DNA of 64,000 nt from Rebecca billardiae RCC1528 (taxonomy: Eukaryota; Protista; Haptophyta): positions 1,612,001 through 1,676,000 of the forward strand of contig OZ251232.1 of assembly GCA_965240325.2 (NCBI GenBank), read 5' to 3'. Below, piece after piece: positions 53,111 to 59,335 of this stretch. The notes beneath the pieces are model-generated. The model saw only the letters and a program-made list of their open reading frames with translations, did no database searches and was not told the origin of the DNA. Position numbers and translations under genes: made by a program. Every line of letters starts with the position of its first letter. The first letter of the stretch is position 1.

Positions 53111-54106
53111 CGGCCGTTGTGTGCACGCGGACCACGGTGCGCGCGGCGACCTTGGCGTGCTCGCCAAGCGCGCCGAAAGCTGCGAGCGCGACGGCGCCGG
53201 TGAGCCCACCAGCTGCGGCGCCACGACCGTCGACAGTGTATTACTCTGCCGAAGCGCCTGCCACGCTTGAGACGCAGCGAGCCGCACACCACAGCTGTCA
53301 GCTGATGGTCCAAGCTCGGTCATGAACCGGCAGCCGCCGCGCAGAGTAGTGCGCCGCGCGAAGGGACCGTTTCGATCTGACGGGATCGCGATGACTGGCT
53401 GATCCAGCGTCGAGCGTGACCGGCAAGTATGCCAAGCTGGGCAAGCACATGCCGCAACGCGCGAACGGTACAAGGGCAACGCGGTACAAGGGCGACGGCA
53501 CACGGCAGACAGGTGCACGTGGGCCGTGGCCACATGCGTGCGATTACACATGACACACATGTACAGTACACGACGTACAAGTACCCGCGACCGTCGATGG
53601 TGGAATCGATGGTGGAACAATGGCGTTGGCTGAGGCCGTTGCATGCGCGAGGAAGGCATCCGATGCGGGCGAGGGCAGGCGGGGCGGGCCAGGGAGAAGG
53701 GGGTGGGTGGAGCTGGGCCCGCCACTATACTCAGCGCACTTCACCCTGTGGCCACCGAAGACACAGCAGCGCGTGCAGCCATGGAGCGGGCGGGCCGCAC
53801 CGCGCGACGTGCGCTCCGAGTCCACGGCGGCCGAGTCGCGAGCCGCTGGGCTGAGATAAGCGCTTATCTCAGCCCGGGCTGAGATAAGCTCGCGCGGAGC
53901 TTATCTCAGCCCGGGCTGATTTAAGGGCTTAAATCAGCCCGGGCTGAGATAAGCTTAAATCAGCCCGGGCTGATTTAGCGCTGCCGGGCGGCGTCCGAGG
54001 GCGGCGTCGGCCGGTCGCCGGGGGCCCCGCCGACTGACGACAAGCGCGGCGGACACGGCCGCGTCGGCGCGCGCCACGGCCGGAGCGAGCGCGGCCGCAT
54101 GGCGGC

Positions 54107-57100
54107 ATGGATGCTCGTCGGCGCATGGTGAGCCCTCTGCGTGCCATGCTCCTCCTCCTCGCCGCCCCAAGCGCGCGCGCGCGCGCGGGCGGCTTGGCAT
54201 GCGCAGCGCGCTCGCTGGCGCCCAGCACGCCGCGCATGGCGGTGCGCATGTGCAGCAGCGGCGCGCCCGATGCGCGGCGCGCCGCTCCGGTGTTGCGTTG
54301 GCACACGCAGGGCCGCGTCTCGCAGCACGACCTGGCCATCTGGCGCGCGGCCGCCGAGGCGGCGGCGGCGGCGGGTGCCGTGCCGGTGCGGCGGCGCCTG
54401 TCTGAGCGCGAGAAGCGCACGGCGGCGTACCGACAGAGCTGGTGCTGCGCAGGGTGCAGGGCCCTGCTCCCGCCGGACTTTGAGGTCGACCACATCCTCC
54501 CGCTCGTGCTCGGCGGCGGCAACGGCCTCCTCAACCTGCAGGCGCTCTGCCGGCCATGCCACGCGCGCAAGACGCGCGAGCAGCGCGGCGCTATCGAGGC
54601 GGCGGCGGCGCGCGCGGAGGCGGCGGCTCCTCCGCCCGCGCCGGGCGGCGGCGGCGGCGCGCCCGCGGCAGAGTCCACGCCCGCACCCCGCGCCGAGTGC
54701 CTCAACGCCCAGCAGGCGCAGGCCGTGCACGCGCGCAGCCGCGCCGTCCGAGTCGCCGCCGGTCCCGGCACGGGCAAGACGCGCGTGCTCGCGCTACGGA
54801 TTGCCGAGCTGGTGCAGGCGCGCGGCGTGCCGCCCGCGTCGATCCTCGCGCTCACCTTCACGAACCGCGCCGCCGCCGAGCTCCGCGCGCGCGTGTGCGA
54901 CTCCGTCGGCGAGGCCGTCGGTGGCGCGCTGTCAGTTGGGACGTTTCACAGAACTTGCCTCGAGCTACTCAGGGCGGACGTCGAGGCAGTGGGCGCGGCG
55001 GAGGCGGTGGGCGCGGCGGAGGCGGCGGGCGCCACCACGCCGGGCGGGCAGCGCGCGTACTCGCGGGGCTTCGCGCTGTACGACGCGCCCGCGTCGGTCC
55101 GACTCACCGCCCTCGCCCTCGCGCAGCTCGGCTCCGACCACCCGCTCGCGCGCCGCCCCGCCGCGGTGCACGCCGCCATCTCGGCGTCTAAGAACAGGAT
55201 GGAGGACGCGCGCGCGTACCGCTCCCGGCCGGACGCGCACCCGCTCGTGGCGGCGGCGTTCGACGCGTACGAGGCGGAGCTGCGCGCGCGGAACTGTGTC
55301 GACTTTGACGACCTGCTGCTCCTCGCCGAGCGCGCGCTGCGCTCGCCCGCGGTGCTGCGCAAGTACCAGGGCCGGTTTCGTCACGTGCTCGTCGACGAAT
55401 TCCAGGACACGAACGGCGCGCAGTACGAGCTGCTGCGGCGGCTGTGCGCGCCCGCGGCGGCGGAGGGCGAGGATGGGAGCGGCGCGAGCGTGTTCGTAGT
55501 CGGGGACTCGGACCAGGCGATCTACGGCTGGCGCGGCGCCGACTACCGCAACCAGAAGCGATTTGATGCCGACTTTGGGCTGCTGCTCGCGCACGGCGGC
55601 GGCGCGGCCGCTGCTGCCGAGCCCGCGGCGGCGCAAGTCGCCGCGGCGCGCGGCGATGGCGGCGATGCTGGCGGCGCTGACGGTCGCGGCGGTCGCGGCG
55701 GCGGTCGCGGCGGTGGCGCGCTGCGGCTGCGGCTTGAGGTGAACTACCGCTCGACTCGGGCTGTACTCGACGCCGCGACGGCGCTCATCGAAGCCGGCGA
55801 CGCCGGCGAACGCGACCCAGTCGCGCTGCGCGCCGTCGCGCCGGGCGCGCCCAGCGCCCGGCCCACGGTGGTGGCGACCGCCGACCAGGACGCGGAGGCG
55901 GCGTGGGTGGCCGAGCTCATCTGCAACCTGCGCGCGTCCGCGCAGACGCGTGTCATGTCCATTGGCGTGCTCTACCGCACGAACGCGCAGTCGCGGCCCG
56001 TCGAGCGCGCGCTGCTTGCCGAGCGCATCCCTGTGCGTGCGCGCGCGCCGAGCGCGCGCCCCGTGCGCGCGCTGCGCGCCCCGTGCGCGGGCCACTTCGC
56101 GCCCGGAGCGCGCGTTAGGCCGTCTGCGCGCGCGCGCGTGTACGCGTGCGCTGCGCCCACCTCCTCCCTCACGCACCGCGCTCGGCCGCGGCCGCGCGCA
56201 GCACACGCTCGTGCAGGCGACGCGCTTCTACGACCGCGCGGAGGTGAAGGACCTGCTCGCCTACCTGCGGCTGCTCGCACACCCGGAGGAGCCGATCGCC
56301 CTGGAGCGCGTGATCAACACCCCGCCTCGCGGGATTGGAGCTGGCACGCTCGGCGCGCTGCGAGAGTATGCGCGTGCGAGGAACGTGTCGGTGTGGGCGG
56401 CGGTGTGCGCGGTTGCCGAGCCCGAGGCCGAGGCGCGCGAAGCGGAGGACGCGCCGCGCCTCTCGAAGCGCGCCGAGGCCGCGGTCCGCGGCTTTCATGG
56501 CGTGATGCGCAAGCTGCGCGCGTGCCTGCAGCTAGGCGAGAGCGTGGTCGAGGCCGCGCCACACGCCGACCGCCCGGATCCCGACCCCGGCGCGGTCGCG
56601 GGAGGCCCGCCGCTCGGCTCGCTGCCAAGGCTCGTTCGCGACGTGCTGCAGAGCTCTGGGTACGAGGAGTACCTGCTCGGCGGCGGCGTGGACGACGGCG
56701 ACGCGCGGCATCGGAACGCGCGCGAGCTCGCGAACCTCGCCGCCCGGTACAGCGCGTCCCAGCTGCAGCCGTTTCTCGACGAGGCGGCGCTGGTGCAGGA
56801 CCAGGACGCGCTAGCGGCCGCGGAGGCACAAGAGGGCGGCCGCGCGGCCGCGTCGGCGCGGCCGGGCCGCGTGAGCCTGCTCACCGCGCACGCGGCGAAG
56901 GGGCTTGAGTTTGACGTGTGCGTCGTCCTTGGCGTCGAAGAGGGGCTCCTGCCGCACAGCCTGGTCGCCGAGGCCGGTGCGCCGGCGCGGTCGGTGCCGG
57001 GGCTCACGGGGCAGCGCGGTGCTGACGCGGCGCGGCTGGATGAGGAGGTGGCGGCGGCGCGGGAGCTCGCAGAGGAGCGCAGGCTTCTGTACGTCGCGAT

Positions 57101-57296
57101 GACGCGCGCTCGCCGCCAGCTCTACCTGTGCCACGCGCGGCGGCGGCTCGTGTGGGGCGTGGCTCGGCAGCACGAGCCGTCACGCTTCCTGGCGGACGTG
57201 CCGCCGCACCTGCTCGACTTCATCGACGCGACGGCGGACCATGCGGGGCAGCAGGGCGCGGACGAGCACGACTATTGTCGCGACCATGAGCTATAG
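54107..57296 (+). CDS. HNH endonuclease - UvrD/PcrA (SF1A) helicase fusion with N-terminal targeting presequence, 2 exons
   Basis: HNH: WCCAGC...[32 protein letters not shown]. Helicase motifs: [63 protein letters not shown] and [13 protein letters not shown]. Intron 56033-56201. Confidence 0.92.
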
Positions 57297-57426
57297 CATC
57301 CGCCAGGTTCAGCAAAATCAATAATACGCGGATTCAAGGGGGCGGGCGCGCTGTGAGCTGATGACGCGCATGATACCGCCGCCATCATATATCGTCCGCA
57401 GTTCGTCCACTATCGGCAGTATACGA

Positions 57427-57478
57427 CATATATATATATATATATATATATACATACATACATACATACATACATACA

Positions 57479-57514
<36 letters not shown>

Positions 57515-57522
57515 TATATATA
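57427..57522. repeat. Compound microsatellite (TA)n(TACA)n(TA)n
   Basis: Seen directly. Confidence 0.95.
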
Positions 57523-58547: not shown

Positions 58548-59010
58548 TCAGGCCGCCTTGGTCTTGGCGGCCCCGTCCGCGGGCGCGCCGCTGTCAAAGC
58601 TGAGCGCGAGGCCGTCGATGCAGTACCGCAGACCCGTCGGCGTGTTCCACACGTACCCGTCGGCGAAGAGGTCGCCCAGGTGCCCCTTGCACTTGGCGCA
58701 GTGCACCTCCGTGCCGATCACCGCCCACAGCGCGGGGTTCTCCGACGTGCGCTCGACGCCGGGCAGCTTGTCGTAGAAGCTGGGCCAGCCGGTGCCAGAG
58801 TCGAACTTCTTGGCCGAGCTGAAGAGCGGCGTGGCGCACGCGGCGCAGGAGAAGGTGCCCGAGCGCTTCTCCTTGTAGAGCGGCGAGGAGAAGGGCGGCT
58901 CCGTGCCGCGCTCGAAGAGGATGTGATACTGCTGCGGCGTGAGGACCTGCTTCCACTTGGTCAGCTCGGCCGGCGCCACGTACGGCTCCGCCGACGCGGC
59001 GCTCGCGGGC

Positions 59011-59045
<35 letters not shown>

Positions 59046-59162
59046 ACCATGCACGAATGTGCGCCGCGATCCGACCAGCGAGGGCGCCATGACGCGCCGC
59101 GTCGGCTGCGGGACGGCCGTCACCAGCGCCAGGAGGTGGGCGATCGCGGCAAGGCCCGCCAT
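58548..59162 (-). CDS. msrB: Methionine-R-sulfoxide reductase MsrB with plastid/thylakoid-type presequence
   Basis: LTPQQY, GTEPPF, CAAC, KFDSGTGWPSF, EVHCAKCKGHLG and RYCI. Start MAGLAAIAHLLALV at 59162. Confidence 0.92.
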
Positions 59163-59335
59163 GTCGCGCTCGGGACGGCTGATGCGCGGACGGTGCAGGA
59201 TGCCTGGGTTCTCGCCGTCCGGGTGGCCGGGGCGGATCGATCCCGGACCAACAGTTACGGCCTCCATGCCATTCGAGCCGCCACAAGCCCTTCGGATGGC
59301 GAGCATGCGCTGGTGATCAAGCGGGGAGGGCCGCC

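Follow-up and report, generated by a model that had tools for sequence, protein, structure and literature searches.

An HNH Nuclease Fused to a Tudor-less PcrA/UvrD-Type Helicase behind a Putative Organelle Presequence in Algae

1. Introduction

Fusions of a helicase with a nuclease, among them RecBCD/AddAB, Dna2, Cas3, and ZRANB3, are central to DNA repair and immunity. The DNA analyzed here, a stretch of 64,000 nucleotides (nt) from Rebecca billardiae RCC1528 (contig OZ251232.1, positions 1,612,001 to 1,676,000; hereafter the window, in whose coordinates positions are given unless another contig is named), carries on its forward strand, at 54107-57296, a gene in which an HNH nuclease domain stands ahead of a UvrD/PcrA-type helicase and behind a hydrophobic leader. 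The locus was singled out by a prediction made from the DNA letters alone (hereafter the original prediction), and it raises the questions of whether the fusion is real, in which compartment its product would act, and what an enzyme of this design would do there. The answer that we favor, with somewhat more confidence than doubt, is that this is a single-copy nuclear gene for a protein that joins an organelle-type (probably plastid) presequence, an HNH nuclease, and a Tudor-less PcrA/UvrD helicase, and that would work by nicking or cutting DNA and then peeling a strand away.

2. Gene Structure

The fusion gene consists of two exons, 54107-56032 and 56202-57296 (+), and its parts, with residues numbered in amino acids (aa) within each exon, are the following.

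54107..54268, + strand: putative presequence, aa 1-54, with a basic start, the hydrophobic core AMLLLLAA, a candidate AGG/L site, and an acid-free R/S/A/P-rich stretch
54380..54604, + strand: HNH module, aa 92-166, with a basic leader helix, a Cys4 zinc site, and a beta-beta-alpha-metal core
54605..54700, + strand: Ala/Pro/Gly-rich flexible linker from HNH to helicase, aa 167-198, without stop or frame change
54701..56032, + strand: exon-1 part of the superfamily 1A (SF1A) helicase, aa 199-642, with motifs Q to V
56033..56201, + strand: intron of 169 nt, GTGCGT...CGCAG, which shifts the reading frame by +1, as placed by orthologue alignment
56202..57296, + strand: exon 2, 364 aa, coding to 57293 with stop TAG at 57294-57296, holding the rest of domains 2A/2B and a short tail

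The open reading frame (ORF) starts at ATG 54107 (+), with a second in-frame candidate ATG at 54125 and an in-frame stop about 70 nt 5′ of the first. Past codon 642 the frame of exon 1 turns into Arg/Ala-rich nonsense, and the helicase resumes in a different frame from about 56202; the 169 nt at 56033-56201 (+) have GT at 56033, AG at 56200-56201, and a pyrimidine-rich tract 5′ of the acceptor. Both exons were scored and searched separately, never joined. The pcrA profile exits exon 1 at profile position 369 and resumes in exon 2 at 373, the two translations abut without gap or overlap on three orthologues in BLASTP alignments (P0001 at 545/546, P0002 at 714/715, and P0343 at 712/713), and the sequence flanking the junction is collinear with P0002, residue by residue. 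Because of this profile continuity, orthologue abutment, and residue-level collinearity, we read the locus as a two-exon gene split by a GT-AG intron. The original prediction had placed everything on one exon. This is true of the leader, the HNH domain, and the helicase from motif Q through motif V; exon 2 supplies motifs Va and VI.

One could also take the change of frame at about 56030-56200 for a frameshift, in which case the locus would be a gene-model or assembly artefact, either two adjacent genes (one for the HNH domain and one for the helicase) or a frameshifted dead gene. We find this scarcely credible, given that the HNH domain and the N-terminal half of the helicase share one unbroken 642-codon ORF, that GT and AG border the frame change, after which the sequence is again exactly collinear with the orthologues, that the catalytic motifs are all intact, and that many independent assemblies, the MMETSP transcriptome set among them, contain the fusion too. 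In a genome search with short queries, the two-exon fusion gene proved to be single-copy in its own 72-Mb genome, and this type of HNH domain is likewise single-copy there.

3. The HNH Nuclease Module

The HNH domain is matched by two Pfam models, HNH (PF01844) at aa 114-157 (nt 54446-54577; 34.2 bits against a cut-off of 21.4) and HNH_5 (PF14279; 32.4 bits against a cut-off of 27.5). The residues expected of an intact domain (CxxC, DH, N, and CxxCH), as the original prediction had listed them, were all located: C114, C117, D128-H129, N143, C148, C151, and H152 are present and are invariant in 13 fused and viral relatives, and the module as a whole has 21 invariant columns among nine fused proteins. 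An AlphaFold2 model of the 91-residue module, with a predicted local distance difference test score (pLDDT) of 90.9, places two strands between a leader helix and a long one. When this model was used in Foldseek, it matched solely HNH nucleases, at a probability of ~1.0, in the order Gme HNH nicking endonuclease (4h9d), McrA (6ghc), CBASS Cap5, the Cas9 HNH, the ZRANB3 HNH, and T4 endonuclease VII; the E-values, 4e-3 or weaker, are weak because the domain is small. The best sequence matches in the PDB to a profile of the fused-family HNH are the HNH protein of phage GVE2 (5h0m, E 1.6e-9) and that of ZRANB3 (5mkw, E 6.4e-8). The module is conserved at least as well as the remainder of exon 1, its identity to the window protein being 48-61% against 39-44% for exon 1 overall in the same proteins. 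Taken together, motifs, profiles, and model identify it as a zinc-bound HNH of the McrA/HNH_5 type with intact catalytic motifs and predicted activity.

Of the solved relatives, ZRANB3 (the human annealing helicase) resembles the algal protein in being a eukaryotic DNA motor with an HNH domain, and the two HNH domains are alike in sequence and structure; unlike the algal protein, however, ZRANB3 has an SF2/SNF2 motor and a C-terminal HNH, acts in the nucleus, and is unrelated outside the HNH domain.

4. The Helicase

The second half of the protein matches the Pfam model UvrD-helicase (PF00580) at aa 199-490 with E 1.9e-66, and UvrD_C (PF13361) on both exons, with its beginning at aa 542-642 of exon 1 and E 2.9e-34 in exon 2. 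These matches lie far beyond what chance would give, and the helicase motifs are distributed as follows.

Motif Q: exon 1, aa 199, LNAQQ
Motif I: exon 1, aa 218, AGPGTGKT
Motif Ia: exon 1, aa 250, TFTNRAA
Motif II: exon 1, aa 430, DEFQD
Motif III: exon 1, aa 466
Motif IV: exon 1, aa 546, NYRS
Motif V: exon 1, aa 623, YRTNAQS
Motif Va: exon 2, aa 230, HAAKGLEF
Motif VI: exon 2, aa 297, YVAMTRA

With all motifs from Q to VI intact, the helicase is, by its profile matches, a member of the UvrD/PcrA/Rep superfamily of SF1A enzymes. The best family model is pcrA (TIGR01073), which with the exons scored apart gives 263 bits for exon 1 and 187 bits (E 4.5e-55) for exon 2 against an equivalog cut-off of 911, and among proteins of solved structure mycobacterial UvrD1 and Geobacillus PcrA are its best relatives; the bacterial-type UvrD/PcrA helicase of the original prediction is thus borne out. 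The Tudor-like C-terminal domain that it had reported missing is indeed missing: there is no Pfam match to PF21196 in the window gene or in any fused relative, and the domain is present in most of the nearest bacterial PcrA matches. On both counts, the scores under the equivalog cut-off and the lack of the Tudor domain, the helicase appears to stand outside PcrA proper. In bacteria, the PcrA Tudor domain binds RNA polymerase, so its loss fits a role uncoupled from that enzyme.

The likeness to bacterial PcrA, UvrD, and Rep (1pjr, 2is2, 9dci) extends to motifs Q to VI and to the order UvrD-helicase then UvrD_C, with about 37% identity of the window helicase to the PcrA of Chloroflexota and Gemmatimonadota. 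Unlike these enzymes, the algal protein has a presequence, an HNH domain, low-complexity inserts (one of them Gly/Ala/Arg-rich, in the exon-1 helicase at about nt 55590-55720; the Pelagomonas orthologue has fewer such inserts), and a nuclear gene with an intron, and has no Tudor domain.

5. Distribution and Phylogeny of the Fused Family

A word-based search with exon 1 returned proteins with HNH and UvrD domains at 39-44% identity, ahead of bacterial PcrA. Carriers of the fusion are Pelagomonas calceolata (P0003, 830 aa, also in the MMETSP set), Chrysophaeum taylorii (P0010), and several environmental proteins; the nearest bacterial PcrA matches (Anaerolineae, Gemmatimonadota, and others) reach 33-39% identity and have no HNH domain. 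A search from a divergent member, P0006, led to a Chrysochromulina tobinii-like environmental protein of 1179 aa, P0343, which carries both leader and HNH, and the fusion is therefore also found in a haptophyte. The helicase of P0343 is nearly identical to that of an NCBI protein annotated as "ATP-dependent DNA helicase [Chrysochromulina tobinii]" (P0346), a model that begins downstream of the HNH domain and whose C-terminus runs into a MADS-box (SRF-TF) protein, and which is probably a mis-built gene model. With the same architecture in Pelagomonas, Chrysophaeum, and the Chrysochromulina tobinii-like protein, the fusion that the original prediction had proposed is, on these comparisons, real and conserved in pelagophytes and a haptophyte.

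A profile built from the HNH modules of nine fused proteins, used in an exhaustive search, retrieved 2556 representatives at E <=1e-10. A helicase follows the HNH domain in 30 of the 150 best matches, so that at least 30 clusters (at 50% identity) have the fused design, and many more of the top matches are clear N-terminal fragments of fused proteins. P0213, a fragment of a fused-family member that represents one environmental lineage, contains between the HNH domain and the start of the helicase a Cys-rich insert of about 40 aa that resembles a MYND-type zinc finger. The linker in this position (aa 167-198 in the window protein) differs in length and sequence among orthologues.

Separate phylogenies of the two halves, as the original prediction had suggested, gave a clear result for the helicase and no supported placement for the HNH domain (section 7). 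In a maximum-likelihood helicase tree (70 rows, 374 columns), all 19 fused helicases included fall into one clade, with ultrafast bootstrap (UFBoot) and Shimodaira-Hasegawa-like approximate likelihood ratio test (SH-aLRT) values of 99 and 98, respectively. The window helicase lies within the clade of Pelagomonas and Chrysophaeum (100/98), adjoining environmental P0002 (94/78), the Chrysochromulina-like fused group forms a separate clade (100/98), and a Chlorella vulgaris PcrA-like protein without HNH, on a long branch, is a weak sister to the fused clade (83/22). Because the fused helicases form one clade, a single fusion event for all of these proteins fits the tree.

Among prokaryotes, no HNH domain (PF01844) was found on bacterial PcrA among the matches listed in both helicase searches, and the 80 nearest HNH loci from bacteria or archaea all lack a downstream helicase, both negatives leaving aside other HNH subtypes joined to distant UvrD-like helicases; the combination of HNH and UvrD domains was likewise not found among large ESM Atlas clusters. 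Literature searches for an HNH fusion to UvrD/PcrA in plastids, algae, or Pelagomonas returned no paper, and databases hold the fused proteins only under automatic names such as "DNA 3′-5′ helicase". The fusion is thus not a common annotated architecture, and as far as our searches reach, an HNH domain N-terminal to a PcrA/UvrD motor has no published description. The contig of the closest relative (L235) was considered as a transcript and rejected for having no poly(A) end.

6. Leader and Organelle Targeting

The leader of the window protein has no acidic residue between D2 and D55 and is hydrophobic and R/A/S-rich, and its features recur across the family: nearly all full-length members begin with one or two basic residues followed by a hydrophobic core of 8-10 residues, and most orthologue leaders contain an Asp/Glu-free stretch of 36-80 aa rich in Arg, Ala, Ser, and Pro. 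The hydrophobic, signal-like leader followed by an R/S/A-rich stretch that had originally been described is therefore present, as the AMLLLLAA core and the acid-free stretch, and shared with the orthologues. A candidate cleavage site, AGG/L, lies at aa 29/30, and a Gly, Ala, or Ser followed by Leu is also seen in the leaders of Pelagomonas, P0001, P0005, P0006, and P0008. With a home-made heuristic, which looks behind a hydrophobic core for small residues at -3 and -1 and F, W, Y, or L at +1, such a site was found in 17 of the 30 N-termini of the family, where shuffled sequences would give 8.6, an enrichment of about twofold. The high-confidence class of ASAFind needs F, Y, W, or L at +1 (PMC12136025), and according to Dorrell et al., a pelagophyte/dictyochophyte ancestor was the source of many plastid-targeted proteins of haptophytes (PMC5462543). 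The named carriers of the fusion are pelagophytes and a haptophyte, all of them photosynthetic and with red-type complex plastids. Because of the leader features, the +1 site, and the pattern of sharing between pelagophytes and a haptophyte, we favor a plastid location: the presequence appears to be of organelle type and is most likely a bipartite plastid signal. The organelle targeting proposed by the original prediction thus gains from the conserved leader and the nature of the carrier algae, short of being proven.

The same protein might instead be mitochondrial or dual-targeted and maintain mitochondrial rather than plastid DNA, a reading that we consider unlikely. Organelle DNA-maintenance proteins are commonly dual-targeted, the Arg/Ala/Ser-rich, acid-free leaders could form amphipathic helices, and the leaders of P0010, P0011, P0207, and P0251 do not have the signal-peptide-like pattern. 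Most leaders, however, open with an unbroken hydrophobic core of 8-10 residues, then a small residue, then Leu or Trp, as is typical of bipartite plastid signals, and every named carrier is a photosynthetic alga with a red-type complex plastid.

7. Origin of the Two Halves

The closest free-standing relatives of the HNH module are four proteins of about 155 aa (P0121-P0124), which were the only small proteins returned by the word search and which are 44-54% identical to it, including the basic leader before the first CxxC. A further protein from the same cluster as one of these small HNH proteins, P0129, lies on a 37-kb Mimiviridae-like contig (L012) that carries genes for a capping enzyme, MutS7, VLTF3, and an RNA polymerase subunit along with further giant-virus genes. 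IMG/VR matches spanning the whole HNH module come from giant-virus metagenome-assembled genomes (MAGs) and contigs of 100-560 kb, and the fused-family HNH profile gives 73-96 bits for giant-virus MAGs and large viral contigs but at most 62 for bacteria from cultured isolates. The small HNH proteins of giant viruses (Imitervirales-like contigs and giant-virus MAGs) and the phage nickases of GVE2 (5h0m) and Gme (4h9d) share with the algal module the HNH domain, a basic leader helix, and the Cys4 site, at 42-54% identity, but unlike the algal protein they are free-standing, about 80-270 aa long, and have no helicase.

Set against this ranking, some contigs from prokaryotic MAGs or phages reach 74-86 bits on the HNH profile, at least one of which looks truly archaeal, and an HNH tree (131 sequences, 76 columns) gives no supported placement of the algal HNH. 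Because the tree does not place it, the case for a giant-virus origin is one of score ranking: the HNH half appears most like small giant-virus HNH proteins, and the resemblance noted in the original prediction is confirmed in that sense, as a ranking by similarity in which transfer is not demonstrated. The helicase half is, judged by its matches, bacterial PcrA in type without a specific donor that can be named. A viral origin for it was rejected, since the IMG/VR relatives reach at most 33% identity in alignments across most of the query, and up to 44% in short segments alone, against 33-39% for the nearest bacterial PcrA. A cyanobacterial origin is not supported, Cyanobium PcrA being 38% identical against 47% for Dehalococcoidia and lying outside the fused clade. 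A virus-bacterium chimera, as originally suggested, is therefore plausible; the bacterial type of the helicase and the giant-virus-like ranking of the HNH support it, and the HNH tree does not add supported placement.

Several further observations concern relatives of the HNH module. On the Mimiviridae-like contig (L012:7223-10474), the small HNH gene nearest to the algal HNH stands head to head with MutS7, which itself has a weakly matched HNH domain at its C-terminus (aa 851-894, E 9e-4). Next to the small HNH gene, on this contig as on L011, lies a gene for a protein kinase. The nearest non-fused HNH in the tree is carried by a contig from a Caulobacteraceae MAG (L085) that has orphan genes and a weak Erv1/Alr match; because these are unlike an alphaproteobacterial contig, L085 may be mis-binned and rather a giant-virus or eukaryotic contig. 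Tandem double copies of the same type of HNH module occur in the small proteins P0196, P0202, P0226, P0232, P0243, P0244, and P0253. MutS7/mtMutS proteins with a C-terminal HNH, from giant viruses and octocoral mitochondria, parallel the algal protein in combining a repair ATPase and an HNH domain in one chain, although there the HNH domain sits at the opposite end of the protein and is joined to MutS instead of a helicase; according to PMC3166940, that fusion has been proposed to make a repair pathway self-contained.

8. Proposed Function and Mechanism

To load onto DNA, PcrA and UvrD require a nick or a 3′ single-stranded end, and bacteria supply the loading nick by a separate nuclease, namely MutH, UvrC, or a Rep initiator. 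In the algal protein, to judge from its motif content, a linker of about 30 residues tethers a complete HNH domain to a complete SF1A motor. We propose that the protein would be imported into the plastid, where the HNH domain would nick DNA, or cut damaged or branched DNA; the tethered 3′-5′ helicase would then load at the HNH cut and peel the cut strand away for excision or recombination. One polypeptide would in this way replace the bacterial pairs MutH and UvrD, UvrC and UvrD, or RepD and PcrA. We consider such a nick-and-unwind mechanism reasonable.

Most known helicase-nuclease fusions, such as AddA, RecB, Dna2, and Cas3, act degradatively, and the algal protein might do so too: as a processive helicase-nuclease like AddAB/RecBCD or Cas3, its motor would unwind from an end or gap while the HNH domain, reaching the emerging strand by means of the flexible linker, chopped the displaced strand, with no site-initiating nickase, in a role such as end resection or the clearance of damaged organelle DNA. 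AddA and RecB indeed resemble the algal protein in having an SF1A UvrD-like motor and a nuclease in one chain, and addA/recB profiles do match it weakly. These matches, however, cover helicase segments only, at no more than 102 bits against cut-offs of 696-861, whereas the pcrA model gives 263 bits, and the helicase is thus far nearer to PcrA/UvrD; AddA and RecB have a C-terminal PD-(D/E)xK nuclease and partner subunits in place of the N-terminal HNH, and no PD-(D/E)xK domain was matched in the fusion gene by Pfam or NCBIfam models. The nearest HNH domains, moreover, include a nicking enzyme (4h9d) and the structure-specific nickase ZRANB3, and no partner subunit was identified. We therefore rate a degradative enzyme, in either role, as quite unlikely.

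Very improbable, in our estimate, is an antiviral nuclease-helicase that, like the nuclease-helicase defence proteins of bacteria, would act on the DNA of giant viruses. It would accord with the resemblance of the HNH module to giant-virus HNH proteins and with the matches of the helicase to GajB defence models (up to 185 bits, E 8e-55), but the latter reflect a generic UvrD likeness and are weaker than the 263 bits of the housekeeping pcrA model. Matches to GajB structures in the PDB reach E ~8e-7 at best, and identity with Gabija GajB, which pairs with the GajA OLD nuclease, was rejected given the lower scores, the solitary eukaryotic gene (no search aimed at a GajA partner was made), and a PADLOC likeness that is generic to UvrD/GajB. 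The gene is also single-copy, the named pelagophyte and haptophyte sequences sit in separate, well-supported clades, and a conserved organelle-type presequence is unusual for defence genes.

Several points weigh against the plastid nick-or-cut-then-peel enzyme that we prefer, in addition to those on the HNH ranking and tree given above. Nicking by the HNH domain, as opposed to double-strand cutting, and the coupling of nuclease to motor are features that we infer. Sequence rich in Ala and Leu often shows the +1 pattern of the leader by chance, the leader might serve for mitochondrial or dual import, and the text of PMC5462543 makes no mention of an HNH-helicase protein. The window protein has an odd amino-acid composition and a long branch in the helicase tree, and the intron and a single mRNA are proposed from comparison with orthologues. 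A more specific version of the preferred reading, which we offer tentatively and consider doubtful, is that of a plastid "cut-and-peel" repair enzyme that arose by a single fusion of a giant-virus-type HNH nickase with a bacterial PcrA-type helicase and was passed between pelagophytes and haptophytes with other plastid-targeted genes.

9. Genomic Surroundings

The window has a G+C content of 64-78% (in 2-kb steps), with 69-77% near the fusion gene. An array of nested palindromes of 130 bp lies at 53848-53977, 130-260 bp 5′ of the start codon, with TCAGCCCGGGCTGA cores flanked by GATAAGC or TTTAAG and arms of up to 44 nt that are 89-100% complementary; it may represent a promoter element or be left over from a transposon. 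Directly 3′ of the gene, at about 57410-57520, is a (TA)n/(TACA)n microsatellite, which appears in ORF translations as IYIY.../HTYIHTY..., and an ORF at 58548-59306 (-) resembles, by eye, an N-terminally extended methionine sulfoxide reductase B (SelR). Elsewhere in the same genome are two further, distant UvrD-like loci, G000:C1:4989350-4990147 (-) at 41% identity and G000:C5:2490778-2492121 (+) at 36%, these identities covering parts of the query and the longest-ORF translations being too noisy for placement in the tree; two distant HNH loci are also present.

10. Significance

Two groups of marine phytoplankton, both of them ecologically dominant, have conserved the fusion, which bears an address of organelle type. 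Were the plastid its site of action, the protein would fill a gap in what is known of the genome upkeep of complex plastids, and it would also offer a clean one-protein system for studying how a nick is handed over to an SF1A helicase. Should the cut-and-peel reading be true, a single chain would replace the nuclease and UvrD pairs of bacterial mismatch or excision repair. Of practical importance is that the public gene model of Chrysochromulina tobinii appears to omit the HNH part. The two halves point to separate sources, one bacterial and one giant-virus-like, and its being shared by pelagophytes and haptophytes makes the fusion a useful marker in the debate on gene flow between the two lineages.

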